From Gnetum montanum (lineage: Eukaryota > Plantae > Gnetophyta): a stretch of 64,000 nt of DNA. Location: the NCBI GenBank assembly GCA_015680685.1, contig MNCI01002198.1, forward strand, positions 217,775 to 281,774, read 5' to 3'. The position numbers and the translations under genes were made by a program. Below, in pieces: positions 27,371 through 64,000 of the stretch (position 1 is the stretch's first letter; each line of letters starts with the position of its first letter). Under the pieces are notes generated by a model. The model made no database searches. It was not told the DNA's origin and was given only the letters and a program-made list of their open reading frames with translations.

Positions 27371-29113
27371 ATAATACCCTACTAACTTAGGATAAGATAG
27401 GAGGTATTCAATATTTGTAGTTTGATTTTAAATTTATCTCATTCAATAAGAAAATCCATTGAATCTTTTTAATTTTTTTCATCATCATGTTATCTATATG
27501 AAATTACTAGTTGTATGCTAAAAAAAAGTGGCTTATTGATTTTCCATATTCGTATATATTTTTTTTGCTACATTTATTTGTAAGATAAAATATAGTTTCA
27601 TTCCTCCCTCTATTCTATGTTGTACATATGCATCCAACTTATAAGTGAATAAGCACTTCAATTCTAGATATTTATAATGTTTTATAACCTACATTATATT
27701 AACTAAAAAACTAAAATCATCTATATGTTTTCTATTAGTACATATCCTGACGTTAGTCTTCTCAATATTTACTTCCTTTCCAAATTTGCTACACAAAATT
27801 TATATAGATTGTAGTCCTTCCATTTTTTTTAAAAAAAGAGAGAGAAAGATCAAAGGCACACTATCTTCTAAAGAAATTGTACATGGTTACTTATGTAGAG
27901 CCAATAAAAATTGAATACCTTATGAGTAGGTTCTATATTCAATGTTAAAGTTCATTAACAAGATACCAAACAAAATGGGATAAAATAAACATTCTTATTT
28001 AACATCAAGTTACTCACCCACAATGTTTGCATCCTCGCATCATGTAACATTTTTACTTTGATTCTTTCCTACAACTTTTAGATTGCATAAACTAACTCTT
28101 ATAATGTTAAAAATTCTTAAGTTAAATATAAATATTTGAATAAAAGTTTAATGTAAACAAATTAAATAAACCAAAGAACTAAAGGAACACAAAAGTCTCA
28201 ATTTAACAAAATATATTGCATTATCCATAACTTGCATATTATCTTTTTTAAGACTTTTTCAAATCATACTACTAGTAGATTGGTAATGCATTTCTTAAAA
28301 TAAAAGAATAAATTATATTCACGACGTATAAAATACAAGTATGATTGGCCTTGTATCTACATAATTCGTATCTCAATGAAGATTTTGTAGTAAATAGTAA
28401 GAGTTCACTTTATGCCATTCCTTAAAAGAAGCAGGCCTCTTCAATCGTGGACTTCTTCTAGGGTTACAAGCAGCATCAATGTTGGGCTTGAGTAACGGAC
28501 AGTTATTGTCGAGAGGTTCTTTGAACAATCACTTTTTTGAGTGGCGCCATATAGGGTTACAAAACTTTCACACGCTGGTTGTCATCACAGTGAGCTGTAA
28601 TAGTGAGCTACGTAGACTTCCTCAATAAGGTCTCTTCTGCCTGTTGCTGCCAGCAGTCAGTCAGAGAATCAACAAACAAAATATGCCCAGGAATCAAATG
28701 GTCGTGTCAAAACCCATTACATTTTTGTGGGGTTCGAATCCCTAATCACACACACAAAAGTGATAGCAATCATCAAGAGATCAAAGTGGTGGACAGAAGA
28801 TTGAAAACGAATCTGCATGCAATGACGCCATGGGAAGGCTGTGGATAAAAATTGAAAGGCAAGAATGCAGTTGGACACTGGAATCTAGGCTTTCCTCTAA
28901 GGAGAATGCGTTATCTGGTGTTGGTTCTGCGTCTTTTCTGATATGGAAATCTACAACAGTGACGCCCTTCGTTACTGTCCGCCAACACATGGAAACTGTG
29001 TCGACATATTTAATTTTCTAGGTAGAAGTCCATGTAGTGCAAGATATTAAGCTTCACCAGTTGTTCACAAAACCCTCTCTCTTTCTCTGTTCACAGCCAT
29101 AGCAATCTCTCTC

Positions 29114-29121
29114 TATATATA
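29114..29121 (+). promoter_or_regulatory. Candidate TATA box of a Pol II non-coding transcript
   Basis: TATATATA preceded by CT-rich tracts (29074-29113), about 100 bp upstream of the hairpin, inside a CpG-retaining unique island. Confidence 0.5.
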
Positions 29122-29220
29122 CATATATTCATATTGAGAAGGCAATGTGCCAAGCAAAAGCAAACCAGAGCACAGCAAAGACTGGTGGTCGCTGAGCTGA
29201 TTAACGTTAGATTTTGGAAT

Positions 29221-29321
29221 GGGGAGTAAAGCAGTTGCAAGGATAACACCGGCTGCTGCTTCATGGGGTGGTATGATGACGGAAGTCATGCCGGTGTTAT
29301 TCTTGTGACGGCTTTGCTTCC
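29221..29321 (+). ncRNA. Candidate microRNA precursor hairpin (family not recognised)
   Basis: 29222-29253 pairs with 29290-29321 over 32 positions: 26 Watson-Crick, 5 G:U and 1 mismatch. The 36-nt loop region has further gcttc/gaagt pairing. Non-repetitive context downstream of a TATA box. Confidence 0.7.
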
Positions 29322-29424
29322 AAGCTCTAGTGTTGATATTATGACGGAATTCATGCTGCTGTTATTCTTGCTATGGCCTTACTCGCCGGTCCGCATATTC
29401 TTCCTCAGCTATAATGTTGATAGT
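29276..29424 (+). repeat. Imperfect tandem duplication (65-bp offset) of the hairpin 3' arm
   Basis: atgacggaagtcatgccggtgttattcttg (29276) versus atgacggaattcatgctgctgttattcttg (29341); agctctagtgttgata versus agctataatgttgata. Confidence 0.85.
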
Positions 29425-29623
29425 TGCTTTAGGTAAATTGATTTCCACGTTATCTTTTCTCCCTGCATCTTATCAAAATGAAGATTATGATTATCTACAT
29501 GAGAGGAGACTGTAATTGTAGTTTGGAATTCTTTTACTCTTGCCGTCTTGTAATATTTATGCATATTGGTTTAGTTTTTTTAATACGCTCTCACCTTTTG
29601 TAATCTTAATGGCTTTAACCGCA

Positions 29624-29700
29624 GAGGGATGTAGCGTAGTAGCCCTCAGGAGCGTCATCTCTCAGAAGTGTGGTTGTGGGTTTGATACTTTGATACATGT
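29624..29700 (+). mobile_element. Possible decayed tRNA-derived SINE head
   Basis: gggatgtagcgtagtag (A-box-like) and gggtttgatact (B-box-like) at tRNA-like spacing. Confidence 0.35.
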
Positions 29701-30530
29701 CTGTATTTACAGGTACATTACACTTACCCTGTGATGCAACACTCTTACAATCTACTAACTCTAAATTTCCTTCTTAAAACATCCTACAAACTTCTAATTT
29801 ATAAAGCACACAAGACAACATAATTAGACAACCTTGCCTTTTAGGTTCTGCCTCCACCACAGAAGCATGTACTAATGTATCATTACCATGAGTGTTCTTT
29901 GTTGTTTAACTTGTGTCCAATGGTTAGGCCATTTCCCTATTAGGTAAAATGTTGTATTTTATTATTCTTTTAATCTTAGATTTCAAAAAATGAATAATAA
30001 TTTTTTACAAAAATTTGTAGTACCTTAGATCAATAACATAGAAGAGAAACTCTAAAAAGAAGTCCCATAATTTTGAAATGCCTTTTCAAGTATTTTTTTT
30101 CATTACAACTAGTCTTGAAAAATTGTCTAAAGTAAGAAAAGAATCAGATCTTTCTTATATTCAAAAATGCTTTCATAAGTTTCCATTTTCTAGTAAAAGG
30201 TTTATTGTAAAAAAACAAAAAAGGAAAAAACTCTCTGTAAATACCTAAGAAAGCATCAATCAAAAATAATAAACAAATAGCAATAGAAGCTAAAAGCTTC
30301 TCCAACTTGAGGATCAAAAACATGCTGTGCAATTGGACACTTAAAAAACAAAAAAAAAAAAAAAAGAAGATTTGAGCAAATGAGCCTTTATGTAAAAAAG
30401 GAGGACATGGAAAAGAAACAATTTCTACTTACCTCTACTAAAACCCCTTAGATCTATCGGATTAGTTCAAAATTTTTTAGATATTTTTTATTTTAAAAAA
30501 CTTATCACTCATTCATGTCTATTAAAATTA

Positions 30531-33500
30531 AATATCCCTACAACATCTCTTTCATCCTTCAAAAAGTGAACTCATGTAAATAAGAAAGTAGGGGTTGAAG
30601 TGATCACCTACTCAGCAAGTTTGATGTCATGGACTCATACAACATCATCCATGAACTAATCCTCCCAATGGATTAAGTACTCATGCCTCTTGACTCCTTG
30701 AGTACTAGAACAATCCCTTGAGTATGAGTACCTTCTTTTTCATTGAATGCTTGGACTAATCAATAGCCCCTTTCAACTCATCAATGCTTCCGTGTATGGT
30801 CTTCTCATCAACAAGTCCATGATAGTACATAACATCTAAAATATTGAACAAAAAATACATACCATCATCATTTGGTAAATCAACTTCAAAAGCATTATCA
30901 TTGATCTTGGCCTTACTTTTTAAAGGTCCCATCTTCTTGGCTTTCAACTTGGAGAAGTTAACATCTCTCAACTACTTCTTTTTCAAGTGCACTGAAACTA
31001 AGTTACCTACAGCAACATTTGACTTCTGTTTACCCTCATTCCTCTTAAGAACTCCCTCTTTAGCCTTCTTCTCAAAATTTAATTTTAGATGTGCATGGAG
31101 ATCCCTCATCTCTTGCACAAAATTAGCACTAAGTTGAGCTTCTCCATCAAAGATCCTTAATGTATCCATCATCTTAGGACAAAAATCATAATTCACCTCA
31201 AATGGACTTTTACTAATAGCAACATGACAAGCATTATTGTATAAAAAATCAGCATGACACAACAAGTTTTCCCACTTGTTTGGTTGTCCATCACACAAAC
31301 ATCTCAATATGCTCAATAGGGATTTATTCATCACCTTTGTTTGGCCATCATATTGTGGATGATATGCACTAGAAAAATTCAATTTTATCCCAAATTTTAT
31401 TCATAGCCTCTATTTGGCCATTATATTATGGATGAAATGCACTAGAAAAAAATCAGTTTTATCCCTAACATGTTCACAAGGGACCTCCAAAAGTGGTTTG
31501 TGAAATTGGAGTTTTTGTCACTACCAATATTTAAAGGAATTCCATGCAACTTCACAACATGCTAGAAAAATAAATTTGCAACATTAGAAGAATCACTCAT
31601 CTTTTTGCAAAGAATGATGTGTGTTCTCTTAGAAAATCTATCTACAACAATAAGAATTGCATCATTCCCACTCTTGGTTTTTCGAATACCACTTACAAAA
31701 TCCATAGACACACTTTCCTATGGACCCTTGGGAATTGATAAAGGCATGTAATATCCATCCACTCCTTTACCTTCTTTTAATTTCTAACAAGTCAAACAAT
31801 CCTTAAATTTTGAAACTTCAATTACCATATTAGGCTAAAAATAATGCCTACCCATAAGTTCCAATGTTTTATTCTTACCCATGTAACCTACCATACTACT
31901 ACAATGCTTTTCAATTTTTTTTCCTAAAATCACAATTAGAAATAGATACTTTTTTATTCTTAAATAATAGTTAATCTTGAATATGATAATTCCTTCACTA
32001 GTGTACCCTACTCAAAAATGGCTCCTTAAGGCTCCTTCAAACCTATCCAAAATTAACATCATACTCATACAAAATAATAAAATCACCCATACCTTCCACA
32101 TGAGGTACACTGAAATTCACCACATGTACCCTATACAATGCATTAACCACCACATTGTCTTTTTCACTTTTGTATTTCAACACAGAATTAAATTCTTGTA
32201 ACTATGTAATCGACTTCATGTGCATTACACTCAACTTTCTTTTGAGAATTTAGAAACTGTAGTGCTCTATGGTTTTCATCAAAGTGAACTCCTTGAGAAA
32301 TAATTAATGTCTCTAATGCTTAATTTCTTAAAAAATAATATACAAATCCTAGTCATATATGTTGTAATTTTACCTTAACTCATTTAACTTTTTAGAAAAG
32401 AAATCAATGGGCCTACCTTCTTGTAAAAGTACCCCACCAATGAAATGTCCACTTGCATCCACCTCCACTTGAAAAAGCTTATGAAAATCTGGAATTGCAA
32501 GCACTATTTCACTAGTGATTCTTTCTTTTAACAAGTCAAAAGCTCCCTTGGGTTTCATTATCCCACTTGAAATTTTTATTTTTCTTAAACAAAGAAAACT
32601 TAGACCATGAAATACCACTAAAAGTTTTTATGAACCATCTATAAAGCCTTGCTAAACTAAGAAATAATCTTATCTACCCAACATTCTTAGGAGTTGGCCA
32701 ATCCCTAATAGCCTTCAACTTGGTAGCTTCCATCCAAATTTGGTTTTTAGAAACCACATGTTCCAAATATGTGATTTCTCTCTTGAAAAAAAAAAGACTT
32801 TTCTTTACATTGATTAATAACTTTGCCTCTTCTAACCTAAGACACACCATCCACAAGTGATCTAAGTGCTCTTTCTCATTAGAGCTATATACCAATATAT
32901 TATCAAAAAATGCATACAACACTTACTAGTCAAGTTCTTCAATACATCATGTATCAATCTCACGAATGTAGTAGGTGCATTCATGATCCAAAATGGCATC
33001 ATCAACTACTTAAATAGTCCATCTGGTTTCTTAAAAGTTATCTTTCATTCAACACTAGGCCTAATTCTAATTTGATGGTAACCACATTTTAAATAAGATT
33101 TGCTAAAAACCTCTACATTGGTAAGGACATCAATGATATCATCTATCCTTGAAATAGGAAACCTGTGCCTCATTATTATCCTATTTCCTACCCTAAAATT
33201 AAGATACATCCTCCATTCATTGCGATCCTTCTTTGGCACTGGCATTGATGGAACTACATAAGGTCAAATGGATTCCCTCACAAATCCATTTGCAAGTAAC
33301 TTCTCTATTTATCTTTATAATTCTACTAGTTTATTTAGTGACATTCAATAAGCTCTCTCATTTGGAATGGTAGCACCAGGGATGAAATCAATCTCATGTT
33401 ATATATTCCTCATTGGTTGCAATCCATCCAATTCGCCATTGAAAACCTTGGAAAATTTCTCCTTCAAGTCTAGCACACCTATAGGAATTTGAATCTGCAC

Positions 33501-39998: not shown

Positions 39999-41053
39999 TG
40001 ATGAGACGCGACTTACACTAGGCCGCGATATCGCGTACGCGATATCGCGTCTTCTCCTGCGATATCGCGTACGCGATATCGCGTCCCGCCGCCATATCTA
40101 TAAATAAGAGGCGGCACTCCCTTCATTTCCCAATCCTGGCTAGTGCAGCGAAGCTCTGGCAGATTGATCACTCCAGAGTTAGAATTTTTCCCCATGTGCC
40201 CACAGTAGGAGTCCTAGAGTGAACAGCTCTTTATTCGAGCAGCTTGTAACTTGAACCCAAGTTGTGTACAGCAATAAAGATGAACTTGTTTGGATAAACC
40301 TTGCAGCACGTGGTTTCATTTATTGCTTTCATTTACTGCTTTCCTAGTGCGTTCAAGTACGAACTGATTACGAGCATCTACGGACGTGTACGGCTAGTCA
40401 AGGAATCAGTTGCTTGCCGCAATGCATGAGTACGACTCAATTACGAGCATTGGATGCTTGGTAACCCAGTAGCGTATTCCAGGATTCTGCGCTTTGTAAC
40501 TCCAGGGTCCGATGTGTACGGCTAGTTGAGGAATCGGCTGCTCATTGCTAGGCTAGATCGTGTGATAAGTACGACTTAGTTACGAGCACCCACGGGTGTG
40601 TACGGCTGGCTAAGGAATCGGCTGCTTATCACACGTATGCTAAATAGATGCCTCAGTACGACCACTTCGAGCACTTGCGTTACGTGTGGCAATCCCAGTA
40701 ACGATTAGCGTTTGGTAAGCCACAGTTGCGTAGTTCAGGGTGTGTCCGGTAAGTGGGAACGGATGCTGACGCTAGTTAATTTAGACTTAGATCTTAGTTA
40801 GAGTTAGTTTAGTTTTCTCAACCCTTTCCCCTGATAGCATAGGAGATAAGCCGAAAATACCAAAAAAATCACATACCTCAGACTTGTTTAACCATACACC
40901 GTGACACTTACAAGCAAGCCTGGGAAGACAACGAACGATTAACCCCAAGTGTTTCTTGTGGCGTTAAGGCATTTAGTCTGCGGAGTTCGACCGGATCGCG
41001 CGTGCACGCTCGTATTCGTATGGTTGAGTGTAGGGGTACCTCGCCACTCATCA
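39999..41053 (+). mobile_element. Young solo LTR (Athila-like family) with a perfect 5-bp target-site duplication
   Basis: tgatgag...ctcatca termini, cttct at both 39994-39998 and 41054-41058, TATAAATA near 40099, CpGs intact. The end is homologous to the LTR at 4903. Confidence 0.95.
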
Positions 41054-42530
41054 CTTCTATTTAGAAGTCACTTGTTAACCTTTTGGTTTCTTGAATAGTC
41101 ATTACAAAACTATGAATCGTAGTGACTTATTTATTTTATTATACTTCTTGTTGCTTATTACTTCTAATACATCTATTTTTTCTTGTTCCTTGATTCATTT
41201 TTCTTATTTCTTATTTCATCTTAATCCACTATTTTTCCTTTTATTATTTCATGTTACTCATTGTATCTTATTATTTCACATTGCTTCACACATTACAAAG
41301 TGAGAACTTGTAGTCTTTTATTCTTCATAAGGAGTTGTAACTCTTGACCGAATCATCATGATTATTTGTAATTACTAATATATTAAGATAAGAAACTAAT
41401 GATTGTATCTTAAGTTAGGAATATACTCTAAATACATAGTTAGATAACCTTTGGAGGGGTTATGATACCTAGGGTTTTCTTGTTAAAAAAAAGTAAAAAT
41501 TAATGGCTTTAAGCATACATGTTCTTTTAATCTACTATGTTCTTGATCTTAGTGACTTCAAATGCAAGTGTTCAACTTCTATACTTCTCAAAAATGAAGA
41601 AGATAGTATAGCTAAGCTACCTTTGTATGCAATACATATTAATGTATCATTATAATATTAATACCATGAGTGTTCTTTCATATTTAACTTGTCTCATCTT
41701 GTAAGTGATAAAGATTGTCATGAGATTTATGCATATTTCATCTATGTAATTGAATAATCAAAATCTAGTGCTTGAAGTAAGTTGGAATGCATGCTAAATA
41801 GAATACAATAACATTGTTATAAAAGGAACCTTTGTGTGTTTCTTAATTCTATCTATAGTTTTGGTGATCATTGTGGAATATCAGTAAAAAAATGTATAAT
41901 TGACATTGGTTTATAACTACTATCATGAGTAGTTATGCTTCTTGCTTAGCCAAGATCGAAATTAGCTCTAATACCACTCATAAAAGTTTAAAGAGAATGC
42001 AAGACTAGCATAATTACAAAACTACTCTTTATTCAAAGCCTGTAACATAATTTTTTTGAAGGATTCTTTAAAAAAAAAAAGATAAATTTCAGTCATACTT
42101 TTTAATGATGTATGGAAAATTTTAATGCTTTTATTATAATAAATTTTAAAATTAAAATAAATTAATTTTTAATAAGAATGAATAAAAAATGGATGCTCCA
42201 TATATAAGCTAGAAGAAAACCAATAAATATGTGCAATATAATGTGAATTCTATTAATAATCTTAAATAGGCTTATATGTTGATATACTTGAATATATATA
42301 GGAATTTGAAAATTCTAAAAATATTAGTTTTTATTTAAATCTAATAAATTCAAAATCCTTTAAAGCTTGCATTTGAGATCATTCAAACACTTAACTAGCA
42401 AGTACATCTTTTTCCCATGTCCTAAACAAATATAGCAAAATAGTAAAAAGAAACATACATAAAAAATAACAAAACAGTGAACATAGAAAAATATATAAAA
42501 ACTCAGATAATTGCAAAAATAACCAGCTTG

Positions 42531-45199: not shown

Positions 45200-46085
45200 T
45201 AACCAAGCAACCTTATTTATTAGTATATAATTACCCATGCAATACATATCATTAGGTATTTATAGAAATTTTTGTAATAAGTATATCGTTTACAACATAT
45301 GATCCATATAAAATCATGTGTATTCAAGAAGCCTTTATTACTCATAACTAGTTAATCATGCAAGACCTAGAAACCTCATTTAATTAAGAATTATATATAC
45401 AATATCAAATCATGCATGGCTAAGTAACCTCAATTATCATTAGACAATTGACCATGAAATACCTACCATTAAGTATTTATATAAATTTTCATAATAAGTA
45501 TATCATTTATAATATTTCATTCATATTAAAACATGGATAGTCAAGTAACCTTAGTTATTAGTAGACAATTAACCATGCAATACCTACCATTATGAAATTA
45601 TAGAAAGTTTCATAATAAGTATATCGTTCATAATATATCATCTATATTAAACCATGTGTGACTAAGTGACCTTAGTTATTAGTAGAAAATTAATCATGCA
45701 ATATCTACCATTATGTATTTATAGAAATTTTCAAAATAACTATATCATTCATAATATACTATCCATATTAAATCATGCATGTGCAAGCAACCTCCATTAC
45801 TCATAACTAGCTAATCATGCAAGACCTAAAAACCTATGTTACTGTAAACATTATAGAGACAATATTAAATCATGTATGATAGAGCAACCTGAGTTATCAA
45901 TAGACAAATAATCATGTAATACCTATCATTATTTATTTATATAAATTTTAATAATAAGTATATTGTTCACAATATATCATACATATTAAATCATTCGTAG
46001 TTGAGCAACCTCCATTACTAATAACCCATTAATCATGCAAGACAAAGAAACATACATAATTCATAACTAGTTAATCATGCACGAT
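45200..46085. repeat. Composite tandem array of about 121-bp (A) and about 97-bp (B) units
   Basis: Units begin with aagcaacct-like motifs near 45206(A), 45325(B), 45422(A), 45543(A), 45664(A), 45785(B), 45882(A) and 46002(B). Confidence 0.8.
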
Positions 46086-47210: not shown

Positions 47211-48834
47211 TGAGGGTTAGTCCTCCTGATGTCATATGAGTGAAGATGTGCTTCTTTAGATGAGTCAACTATGTGTTGGATGCTTCTATCATGGATTTAG
47301 CAATGCTATGATTCTTATCAATAGTTATAATTGTTATCCCTAAACTAGGGTTAGCCCTCATATTGTCATATTAGCAAAGATATTCTCCTTTAGATGAGTC
47401 AACTATGTGTGGGGTGCTTATGTCATGTATTTAACAATGTTGTAATTCTAATGAATAGTTTTAACCCTAGTCCTTGAACTAGGGTTCACCCTTGTGTTAT
47501 CATCTTAGCAAAGATGTGTTCCCTTAGATGAGTGAACTATGTTTGAGGTGCTTGTGCTATGGGTTTAGCAATGTTGTGATTCTAATGAATAATTCTAACC
47601 TTGATCCTTGAACTAGAATTAGTCATCATGTTATCATATCAGTGAATATTTGCTTCCTTTGATGAGTTAAATTTGTATGGGGTGCTTATGTTATGTGGTT
47701 AGCAATGTCATGATTGTAATGGATAGCTCTAACCCTAGTCCCTGAACTAGGGTTAGCCCTCATTTTAGCATCTTAGTGAAGATGTACTTCCTTGAAATAG
47801 TCAATTGTGTGGGGTGCTTGTGTCATAGGTTTAGTAATGTTGTGATTCTAATGGATAGTCTTAACTCCATTCCTTAAACTAGGGTTACCTCTCATGTTGT
47901 CATCTTAGTGAAGATGTGCTCTGTTCAACAAGTCAACTATGTATGGAGTGCTCGTGCCATGGGTTTATTTTGTAATTCTAATGGATAGTTCTAACCGTAG
48001 TTCCAAAACAAGGATTAGCCTTCATGTTATCATATCAGTGAAGATATGCTCCCTTAGATAAGTCAATTATGTGAGGTTCTTATATCACGGATTTATCAAT
48101 GTTTTTATTCTAATGGATAGTTTGAACCCTAGTCCCTAAACTATGGTTATACCTCATTTTGCCATCTTAGCAAAGATGTGCTTCCTTAAAATAGTCAATT
48201 GTGTGTGTGGTGCTTATGTCATGGGTTTAGCAATGTTGTCATTCTAAGGAATAGTTTGAACCCCAATTCCTAAACTAGGGTTAACCCTTAGTATATCATC
48301 TCATTGAAGATGTGCTCCCTTGAACAAGTCAACTATGTGTAGGGTGCTTGTCTCATGGGTTTAGCAATGCTGTGATTCTAATGGATAGTTCTAACCATAG
48401 TCCCTAAACTAAGGTTAGTTATCATATGATCATCTTAGTGAAGATGTGCTTTCTTAGGTAAGTCAATTATGTGTGAAGTGCTTTTGTCATGGGTTTAGCA
48501 ATGTTGTGATTCTAATGAACAATTCTAACCCTAGTCCCTAAACTAGGGGTTATCCTTCATGTTACCATCTCAACAAAGGTATGCTCCCTTGAACGAGTTA
48601 ACTATGTGTGAGATGCTTGTGTCATGAATTTAGCAATGTTGTGATTCTAATAAATAGTTCTAACCTTAGTCCCTGAACTAGGCTTAGCCCTCATGTTGTC
48701 ATCTTAGTGAATATGTACTTCCCTAGACTAGTCAAGAGTATGTGGGGTGCTTGTATCATGGGTTTAGCAATGTTATGATTCTAATGGATAGTTCTAAGCC
48801 CAATCCCTAAACTAGGATTAGCCCTCATGTTGTT
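47211..48834. repeat. Satellite, about 12 copies of a 134-bp unit with an internal palindrome
   Basis: The ctagggtt-type anchor recurs at 47345, 47479, 47613, 47747, 47879, 48009, 48141, 48275, 48409, 48543, 48678 and 48812. Confidence 0.95.
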
Positions 48835-50654: not shown

Positions 50655-52077
50655 TGTAACGTCTGAAAACATCGGTGGCTGGAACACCGAGAGGTTACCA
50701 GGTGTATAGCCTAACCCCGGATCCATGTGAGGGCCGTGGTAGAGAAAATAGAAATGGGGTGCCCTAAATAGTCTTGTCAATTAGATAGGGACTTACAAGG
50801 TGTCAAATAACCTCTTGCAAACAGTAATTTTGGAATGTAATAAGTGATGGGTGTAATGAATGGAAACGTGAGATGCACAACAGTAGAAACATATCATAAC
50901 ATGTAACCGAAACAATAGACACAATTGCACACTTGATAATGCAAAGTAAATGTTGTAATAAGGCAAAAAGAGAGTTTGAATAAGAAGATGCACTACCCCA
51001 AAAGGGGGAGTGTAACCAATTACAAAAGGGTATACACAGTGTACAATAGATGCAGTGGGAGCACAGTTACAACATCAGTGGTGTCAGGCTATGAAGTTTG
51101 GTGCTCACTATTTTGAACTATGCTTGCCAGGTTGGTAGCCATGGTGTACCATGTGAGGTTCTACTGGGCTGCAATGGGGCTACAGTGTACCGTGTGGTGT
51201 GCTCCGGGTCTCGTTCGTCCATAGATCTAAGTGTTAGGATGCCAAAGTGTCAAATGCCAAAATGGAAGTGCCAACTGCCTTGCTGGTGAAAGATGGAAGC
51301 CTCCCCCTTCTTCCCCCTCTTTCCATTAGGGTGTAGGGGTATTTATAGGGCTAGGATTAGCCCAAAATGCAGATCAGGTGCCACATGGCAGTGCGGTGGG
51401 TGGGACCATGTTGTCTGCTATGCTTGTCCCATGTTACGTGTGGGACATAGGATGTTGGCTGCAACACTGGATAGGGTGCTATGCTGCAGTAGACATGGTG
51501 TTGTGCTACGCTGCATAACATGGTGCTATGCTACAGAGTGTGACAGGGTGCTATTCTACACAGCGTAATAGGGTGCTATGTTGTAGTAGACATGGTGCTA
51601 TGCTACGTAGCATAATAGGGTGCTGCACTATGCGAAGCTACACAATGTAACAGTGTGCTACGCTGCATAGCGTAGCACCATGTCTACTACAGTGTAGCAC
51701 CCTGTTACGCTACGTAGCATAACACCATGTCTATTGCAGCGTAGCAATGTGCTACGCTATGCAGGGTAATAGGGTGCTACATTGCACTATGCTACATAGC
51801 GTAACATTTTTCTATGCTACGTAGCGTAACATTTTGCTATGCTACGTAGCATAACAAGATGCTACGTTGCGCTATGCTATGCCGCATAATGGGGTGCTAC
51901 ACTATGCAACATAGCAGACAGTGCTATCGTTCTAACACTTAGAAAAATTTTGTAAATTTGGCAGTTGGAGCTGACTACACCCAACACTCTGGAGAAATTT
52001 GGGCAAAGTACCACCGTTTTGACATTTAGCCAAATTTGTAGTTGCGATGCCAAGACCCAAAATTTTGTGGTGTTTCA
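50655..52077 (-). repeat. 3' LTR
   Basis: tgtaac...gtttca termini, minus-strand TATAAATA near 51340-51347, minisatellite at about 51460-51920. Confidence 0.92.
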
Positions 52078-58258: not shown

Positions 58259-59536
58259 TATAACAATCAGAAACATCGGTGGCTAGAACATTGAGAGGTT
58301 ACCAAGCGTACAGCCTAACCTCGAATCTGTGTGAGGGCCGTGCTAGAGAAAGTAGAAACGGTGTGCCCTAAACGGTCTTTTCAATCAGACAGGGACTTAC
58401 AAGGTGTCAAATAACCTCTTGCAAATAGTAATTTTGGAATGTAACACATGATGGGTGTAATGAATGGAAACGTGAGATGCACAATAGTAGAAACATATCA
58501 CAACACGTAATTGGGACAGTAGACATGATTGCACACTTGATAATATAAAGTAAATGCTGTAATAAGGCAAAAAGAGAGTTTGAGTAAGAAGATGCATTGC
58601 CCCAAAAGAGGGAGCGCAACCAATTAAAAAAGGGTATACATAGTGTACAATAGGTGTAGTGGGAGCACAATCATAGCCTCGATCATGTTAGGCTATGAAG
58701 TCTGGTGCTCACTGTGTTGAATTGTGCCTACCAGGTTGGTAGCCACGGTGTACCATGTGAGGTTCTACTGGGCTGCAATGGGGTTGTAGTGTATTGTGTG
58801 GTGTAGGTGTGCCTCTCTACCAGGGTGGTGTGCTCTGGGTCTCATTCACCCACAGAGCTAAGTGCCAAGATGCCAAAAAGCCAAATGCCAAAATGGAAGT
58901 GTCAACTGCCTTGCTGGAAAAAGATGGAAGCCTCTCCCTTCTTCCCACTCTTTCCATTAGGGTGCAGGGGTATTTATAGGGCTAGGATTAGCCCAAAATG
59001 TAGATTAGGTGCCACATGGCAGTGCTGTGGGTGGGACCATGTTGTTTGCTATGCTTGTCCCATGTTACATGTGGGACATAGGATGCTAGCTGCAACGCTA
59101 GACAGGGTGTTAAGCTATGCTGTGTAACAGGGTGCTATGCTACACAGTGTGATAGGGTGCTACGCTACATAGTGTGATAGGGTGCTACGTTGTAGTAGAC
59201 ATGGTGCTATGCTATGCTGTGTAATAGGGTGCTACGTTGTGTAACAGGGTGCTACACTACATAGTGTAAAAGGGTGCTACGCTATAGTAGACATGGTGCT
59301 ACGCTACACGGCGTAACAGGGTGCTACACTGTAGTAGACATGGTGCTACGCTACGTAGTATAACGGGCTACTATGCTATGTAGCATAGCAGAAAGTGCCA
59401 TTGTTCTGACACTTAGAGAAATTTTGCAAATCTAGCAGTTGGAGCTGACTACACCCAACACTCTAGAAAAATTTGGACAAAGTGCCACTGTTTTGACACT
59501 TAGCCAAATTTGCAGTCGCAATGCCAAGACCCAAAA
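58259..59536 (-). repeat. 5' LTR, missing its outer 15 bp
   Basis: Colinear with 50655-52062 and lacks ttttgtggtgtttca. Confidence 0.9.
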
Positions 59537-62140: not shown

Positions 62141-63226
62141 AATAATGTATTTCATTAATAAATTTCTCCTATTTAGGTATATTTTTATTTAAATAAACAA
62201 TACATACATTTAGAAGGTTAGTATAGTATAGTCTATTCCTTACTTGAGTTACATTATAGGATCAAATCAGTAATATTGTTTAGAATGTAAAGAAGCAAAT
62301 GAATCTTGCCAAATCCTGGTATTTGACTAATATGAAGCCATAAGAGAGACATGAGGATGTTCATATTTTTGTGCAATCCATTGATAGCAACTCCTTCAAG
62401 GATGAGGGAATCATTATTGCATTTTGTGTTGGAAATAATGACATTATTTACATTCAATTAGAGAAGCTACTTTTATTAATGAATGAAATACTTCAAAGTG
62501 GTAGGTTTCTTCTTGGGACCTTGGACATGGATTGAACTAGGTCATCTGCTACAATAAGAATATATGACATAGAAAGGAATGATTTTAACTTTATTGAGTA
62601 TGAGGTTGTGGCATTTATAAAGAGGTTTCTTCAATACAAGATAATGATAATAACATTGTCTATTTTTCTTTATATGAGGAATCATATGAATCAATCTTAT
62701 AATTTATATAATGAGATTCTCCTAACATATTAGCTAAGATCATTTTCTATGCACATTATATTATCTATTTAGGAACTACCTACAATCACTCTACATAAAT
62801 CAAAAAAGAAATCAGAGTCCCAAAGTAAAAGAGTTGTTTGGGTTACTAATAAGAAAATCAAGGTAGAAATAATGTAGAAGGGATATTTCCATCCTAATTT
62901 CTCAACAAGGTATTTGATCAAAATTGATAAATCCAACCAGGCTTTAGATAAGTTAATGATGAGACGCGACATGCACTGATATCGCGTACGCGATATCGCG
63001 GTCCGCCGCCATATCTATAAATAAGAGGCGGCACTCCCTTCATTTCCAAATCCTAGCTAGAAGTAGTGAAGCTCTAGCAGATTGATCACTCCAGAGTTAG
63101 AATTTTTCCCATGTGCCCGCAGTAGGAGTCCTAGAGTGAACGACTCTTTATTCGAGCAGCTTGTAACCTGAACCCAAGTTGTGTACGGCAATAAAGACGA
63201 ACTTGATTGGATAAACCTTGCAGTAC

Positions 63227-63803
63227 NNNNNNNNNNNNNNNNNNNNNNNNNNNNNNNNNNNNNNNNNNNNNNNNNNNNNNNNNNNNNNNNNNNNNNNNNN
63301 NNNNNNNNNNNNNNNNNNNNNNNNNNNNNNNNNNNNNNNNNNNNNNNNNNNNNNNNNNNNNNNNNNNNNNNNNNNNNNNNNNNNNNNNNNNNNNNNNNNN
63401 NNNNNNNNNNNNNNNNNNNNNNNNNNNNNNNNNNNNNNNNNNNNNNNNNNNNNNNNNNNNNNNNNNNNNNNNNNNNNNNNNNNNNNNNNNNNNNNNNNNN
63501 NNNNNNNNNNNNNNNNNNNNNNNNNNNNNNNNNNNNNNNNNNNNNNNNNNNNNNNNNNNNNNNNNNNNNNNNNNNNNNNNNNNNNNNNNNNNNNNNNNNN
63601 NNNNNNNNNNNNNNNNNNNNNNNNNNNNNNNNNNNNNNNNNNNNNNNNNNNNNNNNNNNNNNNNNNNNNNNNNNNNNNNNNNNNNNNNNNNNNNNNNNNN
63701 NNNNNNNNNNNNNNNNNNNNNNNNNNNNNNNNNNNNNNNNNNNNNNNNNNNNNNNNNNNNNNNNNNNNNNNNNNNNNNNNNNNNNNNNNNNNNNNNNNNN
63801 NNN
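63227..63803. other. Assembly gap (577 N)
   Basis: Run of n. Confidence 1.
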
Positions 63804-63804
63804 C

Positions 63805-63999
63805 CTCCATCAGGACGAACAGTTGTGCTGGAGAGATTCAGTTGGTAATATAGTCTTGCCACCAGATCGATCCGTTTCGAGCATGCTTCTCCGTGAATTG
63901 GCACAGATTGGCATGCAGGACTTATTCGCTGAATACGTTGCTGGAATGTATCGCATAAGGGATTATCAACCCACAAATGCCCAACGTATTCGGGATGCA
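63805..63999 (+). CDS. gag: Partial open frame: N-terminal extension of retrotransposon Gag (both ends outside the visible sequence)
   Basis: LHQDEQLCWRDSVGNIVLPPDRSVSSMLLRELAQIGMQDLFAEYVAGMYRIRDYQPTNAQRIRDA, 65 codons with no stop, ungapped match to the decayed copy at 4425-4619. Confidence 0.75.
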
Positions 64000-64000
64000 A

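Follow-up and report, generated by a model that had tools for sequence, protein, structure and literature searches.

A strand-asymmetric, single-copy foldback as a candidate hairpin-RNA gene in a CpG-retaining genomic island

The foldback and its surroundings

We analysed a 64-kb stretch of DNA (the window) in which a first-pass annotation had proposed an isolated, lineage-specific miRNA gene. The features of the locus are the following:

28300-29970, no strand: unique, GC-richer, CpG-retaining island of ~1.7 kb that contains the hairpin
29070-29121, + strand: promoter-like sequence, as read, with a CT-rich tract (29070-29113) followed by TATATATA (29114-29121)
29200-29218, + strand: 5' strand of the lower stem, pairing with 29319-29337 (14 Watson-Crick pairs, 4 G:U, 1 mismatch) in both the MFE fold and a strand-blind arm alignment
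29219-29224, + strand: asymmetric 6-nt bulge, an indel between the arms that divides the lower from the upper stem
29222-29253, + strand: 5' arm of the 32-bp upper stem, from the repeat search and the pair list
29254-29289, + strand: apical region with predicted small helices (29254-29261/29266-29273 and 29276-29280/29285-29289)
29290-29337, + strand: 3' arm, contributing to the upper stem (29290-29321) and the lower stem (29319-29337)
29334-29383, + strand: unit 2, a direct copy of 29269-29318 found by repeat search (80% identical, 65-nt period)
29430-29437, + strand: splice-donor-like AG/GTAAAT ~95 nt past the hairpin, a possible first-exon end judged on sequence only

Counting pair by pair, we obtained 26 Watson-Crick pairs, five G:U pairs and one A.G mismatch for the 32-bp stem formed by 29222-29253 and 29290-29321, exactly the composition given at first pass. 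The same inverted repeat was independently recovered by the repeat search (32 nt, 81% complementary, 36 nt between arms). The G:U pairs are 29224:29319, 29227:29316, 29236:29307, 29237:29306 and 29242:29301, and the sole mismatch is A29233.G29310. This stem extends into a 138-nt foldback (29200-29337) with arms of 48-54 nt that differ by one 6-nt indel. In the alternative register, which is that of the first-pass annotation, 29222-29224 pair with 29319-29321 and the bulge moves to 29216-29221.

Folding, which had been suggested along with the original proposal, gave -68.5 kcal/mol for the 138-nt foldback on the + strand (z -9.0, with 0 of 200 shuffles as good) and -41.7 kcal/mol on the - strand (z -6.5). 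The stability of the foldback is well past chance, and the + strand is clearly favoured. When the 64 kb were scanned on both strands in 6386 segments of 140 nt, the hairpin ranked third for stability, behind 40021-40160 and 51561-51700, both of which lie in repeated, LTR-like DNA; hairpins of comparable strength number 3-4 in this 64 kb. Judging from this rank, such hairpins are rare here, yet not unique.

Within 29225-29255/29290-29320, candidate 21-nt duplexes contain 3-4 G:U pairs and leave 0-1 base of each strand unpaired. The registers from 29225-29245/29300-29320 through 29235-29255/29290-29310 would all give duplexes with 2-nt 3' overhangs in uninterrupted stem, and U would be the first base in several of the potential 3p and 5p species. 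For plant MIRNAs, Axtell and Meyers reportedly asked in 2018 for a foldback of at most 300 nt whose miRNA/miRNA* duplex contains neither a secondary stem nor a large loop, and for at most five mismatched duplex positions, at most three of them in asymmetric bulges. They are also said to have required that miRNA and miRNA* be sequenced, with 2-nt 3' overhangs and at least 75% precision, in at least two libraries, and a primary Pol II transcript is expected to span the foldback. The structural part of these criteria agrees with the 138-nt foldback and with the registers starting at 29225-29235, which lie in unbroken stem with at most one unpaired base per strand, while registers that cross the 6-nt bulge at 29219-29224 fail the mismatch criterion.

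Strand asymmetry of the arm divergence

To follow the divergence of the arms without the bias of an RNA fold, we compared the 5' side with the reverse-complemented 3' side in an alignment scored by match and mismatch alone. The alignment contained 48 positions and one 6-nt gap, with 38 complementary positions, eight transitions and two transversions. All eight transition differences appear as G:U on the + strand and as A.C on the - strand (two-sided binomial p 0.0078, under a null of symmetric mutation in which each paired transition is equally likely to favour either strand); this statistic is post hoc, as the asymmetry was partly why the locus was flagged, among many flagged hairpins of the genome. 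The earlier observation that the G:U pairs work on the + strand only is therefore stronger than it was originally put, with the same post hoc reading of p 0.008. The arms are ~19% apart and just two of the 48 aligned positions are unpaired on the + strand. Regarding the base composition, the hairpin has a keto skew of +0.23, compared with -0.02 over the 900 nt upstream of it and +0.10 on the downstream side. The G+T excess is thus local to the hairpin, and a regional mutation bias is not its explanation.

A third, direct copy of the arm sequence

The first-pass annotation had seen no other copy in the window. This holds for the whole hairpin but not for 29269-29318, which comprises a portion of the apical region and the bulk of the 3' arm and is repeated directly as unit 2. 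Folding 29200-29410 gave -80.4 kcal/mol, and -48.7 kcal/mol with the true 3' arm blocked. We rejected unit 2 as a competing 3' arm that would act as a switch, because its pairing with the 5' arm is ~30 kcal/mol weaker.

Unit 2 served as a comparison copy in a three-way alignment, where an 'odd one out' rule assigned the changes to a lineage. Five changes could be polarised in this way. In the 3' arm these are two C>T changes, at 29306 and 29319, and an A>G change at 29316; the 5' arm has one A>G change, at 29242, and one C>A change, at 29233. Four of them keep the pairing through + strand wobble, and the only pair-breaker is the transversion, C>A at 29233. Both CpGs are lost in unit 2, while the hairpin arms retain them (CCGG and ACGG).

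Copy number and divergence in related species

The locus is present in public runs labelled as five species (A-E), from four studies, and we compared contigs of two of them (D and E) over 28500-30500. In species D, a 2677-nt contig with an even depth of 13.5 spans 28500-30276, including the hairpin, and its sole break is a 44-nt deletion. In species E, the hairpin is covered by shorter single-copy contigs at a depth of 3-5. True repeats nearby (29974-30040 and 30242-30308) reach depths of ~350 and ~1000, with more than 1000 in a relative, and break the assemblies. The unbroken, even-depth contig and the presence of one copy in the window indicate that the hairpin is single copy, and practically eliminate the MITE reading. 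The many genomic copies with TIR/TSD that would mark a MITE were not found, as there is one copy in 64 kb and a single-depth contig in the relative; and, in line with the first-pass statement that there is no TIR/TSD, 29199/29338 show no convincing target-site duplication. As a separate observation, the 44 nt deleted in species D (29580-29623) lie ~240 nt downstream of the hairpin and are replaced by AT.

Divergence from this locus is 0.75% in species D and 1.4% in species E, so both relatives are too similar for a test of covariation or structure conservation. Within the 138-nt foldback they share two changes. One, 29255 G>A, converts a G:U into an A:U pair in an apical helix; the other, 29206 G>T, breaks a G:U pair of the lower stem. 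The fold is kept in both (-67.3). The 64-nt upper stem has no change in D or E against 0.5-0.9 expected, which is not evidence of constraint either way. Given that the substitution density of the hairpin (two in 138 nt) equals that of the flanks and that one of the changes breaks a pair, purifying selection is undetectable.

A CpG-retaining island next to transposon remains

The island is bordered on the left by AT-rich, CpG-free DNA and on the right by repeats and a degraded Ty3/gypsy remnant that starts at ~30530. Its GC content is 0.41-0.43. For the CpG o/e we obtained 0.56-0.60 over 28001-29500 and 0.80 over 29200-29440, compared with a window average of 0.235 and with 0.0-0.12 for the 500-nt bins of 30001-33000 (repeats and transposon remains). 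With a CpG o/e of 0.80 and the CCGG of the arms kept, this DNA is unlike long-methylated repeat DNA.

Elsewhere in the 64-kb window, we found no similarity to the island beyond short chance-level matches. Membership of an LTR was rejected on account of this lack of similarity and of the start of the gypsy remnant at ~30530. A recent insert of organelle DNA, suggested by the GC and CpG content, is unlikely, since the species D contig passes through at single-copy depth. ARAGORN detected no tRNA in 27500-31000, and none of eight island ORFs had a Pfam match at a meaningful E. For a 57-aa ORF across units 1 and 2, a word-indexed protein search returned no relative, and HMMER, run against 1.84 billion representatives, found 12 weak matches (best E 1.5e-7), none of them from plants. 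In every case the score adds up an 18-20-residue pseudo-match (W..DG..AG..LV) across the repeats of a multi-repeat protein, and of the five proteins that we checked, four had bacterial-type Pfam hints only. We rejected a coding origin of the island DNA, as the Pfam and word searches were empty and the HMMER matches were judged to be chance. With no family, tRNA, domain or plant protein match, the island DNA looks neither coding nor transposon-derived. The hairpin, described at first pass as isolated in a sea of dead transposons, sits in ~1.7 kb of non-transposon DNA that repeats and gypsy remains adjoin on the right.

Besides, we noticed some minor features in the island. Two stretches, 28715-28745 (with the T-loop motif GGTTCGAATCC) and 29628-29690 (GGGATGTAGC...GTGGGTTTGATAC), are faintly tRNA-like by eye; ARAGORN and Rfam were negative for both, and they may be decayed heads of tRNA-derived SINEs, or chance. 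A 40-nt stretch (29878-29917) is 85% identical to 41656-41695 (E 2e-6 within the window), and links two CpG-retaining islands.

Promoter-like sequence and RNA reads

The TATA box claimed at 29114, about 100 bp upstream of the stem, was confirmed as TATATATA at 29114-29121; it precedes 29222 by 108 nt and the extended stem base at 29200 by 86 nt. CTCTCTATATATA occurs once in the 64 kb. The window is AT-rich, and the generic motif TATA[AT]A[AT] has a frequency of 1.4 per kb on each strand, so that the TATA alone is weak evidence. The TATA is identical in both compared relatives (D and E), one of which has a CTCT insertion at 29074. The CT tract and the TATA could work as a promoter, with a predicted start at ~29145-29155.

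We then considered the available RNA data. Neither of two runs with the same species label had reads on 28500-29970: for an oligo-dT RNA-seq run the analysis covered 12.6 million records, which is 26% of that run, and for a very large 'transcriptomic other' run 12.9 million, which is 2%. The few RNA reads placed in 28500-30500 fall on the repeats at 29974-30040, 30175-30375 and 30443-30500, and in the two runs none supports the donor-like site at 29430-29437. Among the indexed runs that contain the stretch, none is on record as RNA. The zero reads in two RNA runs lower the odds of an expressed gene. Primary miRNA transcripts are often rare, tissue-specific and rapidly processed, and could be missed here.

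Family identity and comparison with known systems

With E up to 10, Rfam had no match on either strand of the hairpin, and at gathering score the whole window had none on it, so that MIR169 and every other curated family are rejected. This agrees with the initial impression that no conserved family could be recognised. A loose resemblance to miR169 had also been pointed out: the 5' arm has, like MIR169, the short string CAAGGAU.AC...CCGG, but only ~9-10 of 21 positions seem to agree. We discarded this as homology, given that the MIR169 covariance model has no match at E up to 10. Metagenome pattern scans, for a hairpin with both arms and for a degenerate arm consensus, yielded 0 matches, and a full-text literature search for 14-16-nt arm strings, in RNA and DNA spelling, found none either.

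Allen and colleagues reportedly put forward, in 2004, a model of MIRNA birth by inverted duplication. The hairpin is like young plant MIRNAs and proto-MIRNAs (Arabidopsis MIR161 and MIR163) in its long, near-perfect foldback with two homologous arms, and also in being single copy, restricted to close relatives, without a conserved family and preceded by a TATA-type promoter-like region. It differs from them in the extra tandem copy of an arm and in arms without coding signal, for which the Pfam and protein searches gave no parent or target gene, and in being a candidate known from sequence. Plant DCL1 is said to follow a base-to-loop rule, with a lower stem of ~15-17 bp below the duplex (work attributed to Mateos, Song and Werner, all in 2010). 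Measured from the single-strand junction at 29199/29338, the lower stem of the hairpin is 16-19 bp long and fits this rule. The branched apical region and the 6-nt bulge, placed where the first cut would fall, are less typical of a pre-miRNA. Endogenous inverted-repeat siRNA loci offer another comparison, as the ~50-bp double-stranded stem could also give several phased or heterogeneous small-RNA duplexes; these loci typically measure hundreds of bp to kb, while the hairpin is much shorter and its bulges and size are nearer to those of a pre-miRNA. With MITE-derived hairpins and MIRNAs the locus shares the foldback size and the transposon-rich surroundings, but it is single copy, lacks a target-site duplication and retains its CpGs.

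It is established that inverted duplications and other local rearrangements can give rise to MIRNA genes (PMC1790633, PMC3237417, bioRxiv 10.1101/2024.07.25.605110), and heterogeneous 'proto-miRNA' products are the early state expected under the inverted-duplication model (PMC1790633, PMC3237417). MITEs are also a frequent source of hairpins and new MIRNA genes (bioRxiv 10.1101/2024.07.25.605110). Reviews report that purely computational predictions of plant miRNAs mostly fail to survive (PMC7924660), which sets a sober prior for the hairpin.

Interpretation and alternative explanations

The explanation that we tentatively favour, with a probability of about 45%, is that the locus may be a young, genus-restricted hairpin-RNA gene on the + strand, either a MIRNA or a proto-MIRNA, that would yield small RNAs. 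Within this reading, the status of canonical miRNA is unproven and rather unlikely. Both arms would have come from unique DNA, neither coding nor transposon-derived, through a local inverted duplication, and one arm would have gained, later or in parallel, the tandem copy that is unit 2. Pol II would start ~30 nt past the TATA, at ~29145-29155, and the transcript would fold into a lower stem of 16-19 bp, the 6-nt bulge and a near-perfect upper stem of 29-32 bp, from which a Dicer-like enzyme could excise 21-22-nt duplexes. A stem so long and perfect could equally give heterogeneous 'proto-miRNA' products. The fold, its strand asymmetry, the single copy, the presence in relatives and the CpG retention are observed, while transcription, dicing and any target, and hence the label 'miRNA', are what we infer for this hairpin. 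The lineage-specific miRNA of the first-pass annotation gains from the foldback anatomy, the + strand asymmetry and the single copy, and loses from the zero reads in two RNA runs; it is offered here as a hypothesis and not as a finding.

The main rival to a hairpin-RNA gene is an inert relic, in which inverted and tandem duplications of intergenic DNA decay neutrally, are hardly or never transcribed, and show G:U at all eight transitions by chance. We regard this as a real possibility, if somewhat short of even odds. It accounts directly for the silence of both RNA runs and for the lack of an RNA record among the indexed runs containing the stretch, and it would leave the divergence of the relatives equal inside and outside the hairpin, as is the case. 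Strong hairpins are common in the window, a TATA motif is frequent in AT-rich DNA, unit 2 shows that the region is prone to duplication, and the asymmetry statistic is post hoc, with many hairpins flagged. What an inert relic explains less well is the 8:0 split of the transitions, which has a p of 0.008 under symmetric mutation and no matching skew in the flanks, and the fact that four of the five polarised changes are of the two wobble-preserving kinds. Likewise, the arms have diverged by ~19% and yet pair almost throughout on the + strand, and a unique, GC-richer island that retains its CpGs is gene-like.

One could also argue that the foldback belongs, as a structured segment, to a Pol II transcript that lacks an annotation, such as a lncRNA or a leader or first exon with its end at the GTAAAT donor (29432). 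The foldback would then act in cis on, for instance, stability or translation, and be left undiced. The + strand-specific fold, the upstream TATA, the donor-like site 95 nt downstream and the CpG-retaining island would suit such a transcript. However, the two RNA runs contain no reads or splice joints from it, and the island ORFs have no Pfam match and no plant relative among the 1.84 billion representatives. Moreover, Dicer normally processes a nearly perfect duplex of ~50 bp when a Pol II transcript of a plant contains one. We consider this reading very unlikely. Even less probable, and largely refuted, is an origin of the foldback in a MITE or other transposon, or a repeat locus that makes 24-nt siRNAs for RNA-directed DNA methylation. 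The position between transposon remains would speak for it, as would the known seeding of hairpins and MIRNA genes by MITEs (bioRxiv 10.1101/2024.07.25.605110). Against it stand the single copy in the window and in the assemblies of the relatives, where real repeats nearby break the contigs at depths above 1000, the lack of a convincing target-site duplication at 29199/29338, and a CpG o/e of 0.8, which argues against long-term methylation.

Returning to the hairpin-RNA gene, a more specific version would have a genus-restricted MIRNA arise from inverted and tandem duplication of anonymous unique DNA, with neither a coding-target nor a transposon origin, and with the + strand fold under selection since then, so that the arms would have diverged by wobble alone and retained their CpGs. 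This version we hold to be improbable; if true, it would be a de novo origin, that is, a clean and datable miRNA birth with the unused unit 2 alongside as an internal neutral control.

Plant genomes contain dozens to hundreds of lineage-specific MIRNA genes. If small RNAs confirm the hairpin, it will be one more of these, which is routine by itself. The locus does have three adjacent paralogous copies, of which two are held in the hairpin and the third is free. Paired arms can be compared in their divergence with an unpaired duplicate, with wobble-only changes and retained CpGs on the one hand and CpG decay on the other. If the locus is silent, it will be a reminder that a fold, a TATA and a strand asymmetry together do not make a miRNA.

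Other features of the window

The most stable hairpin of the window, at 40021-40085, is a 26-bp perfect stem of CpG-rich palindromic repeats (CGCGATATCGCGTACGCGATATCGCG, twice) and is followed by TATAAATA at ~40100. The sequence at 40185-40310 recurs nearly identically at 63100-63226, and 62921-63060 is also among the strongest folds. Together, 40021-40310 and 62921-63226 appear to be two copies, ~23 kb apart, of a young LTR-like or promoter-bearing element that is undepleted in CpG (o/e ~0.9-1.0). Just inside this CpG-rich element, 40380-40640 holds three direct repeats of ~60-110 nt with the core GTACGGCTAG..AAGGAATC.G.TGCT. A run of N (assembly gap) extends from 63227 to ~63850, and we dismissed the 'long ORFs' in several frames at 63131-64000 as artefacts of this gap.

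The second strongest hairpin, at 51561-51700 (-72.6 kcal/mol), consists of 47-nt tandem units (TAGGGTGCTATGCT...) in an LTR region, and these units recur at 59099-59363. Finally, CpG-poor DNA contains two tandem arrays, one with 121/218-bp periods at 45402-46043 and a satellite-like one at 47213-48831, with ~12 copies of a 134-bp unit and 75% matches.
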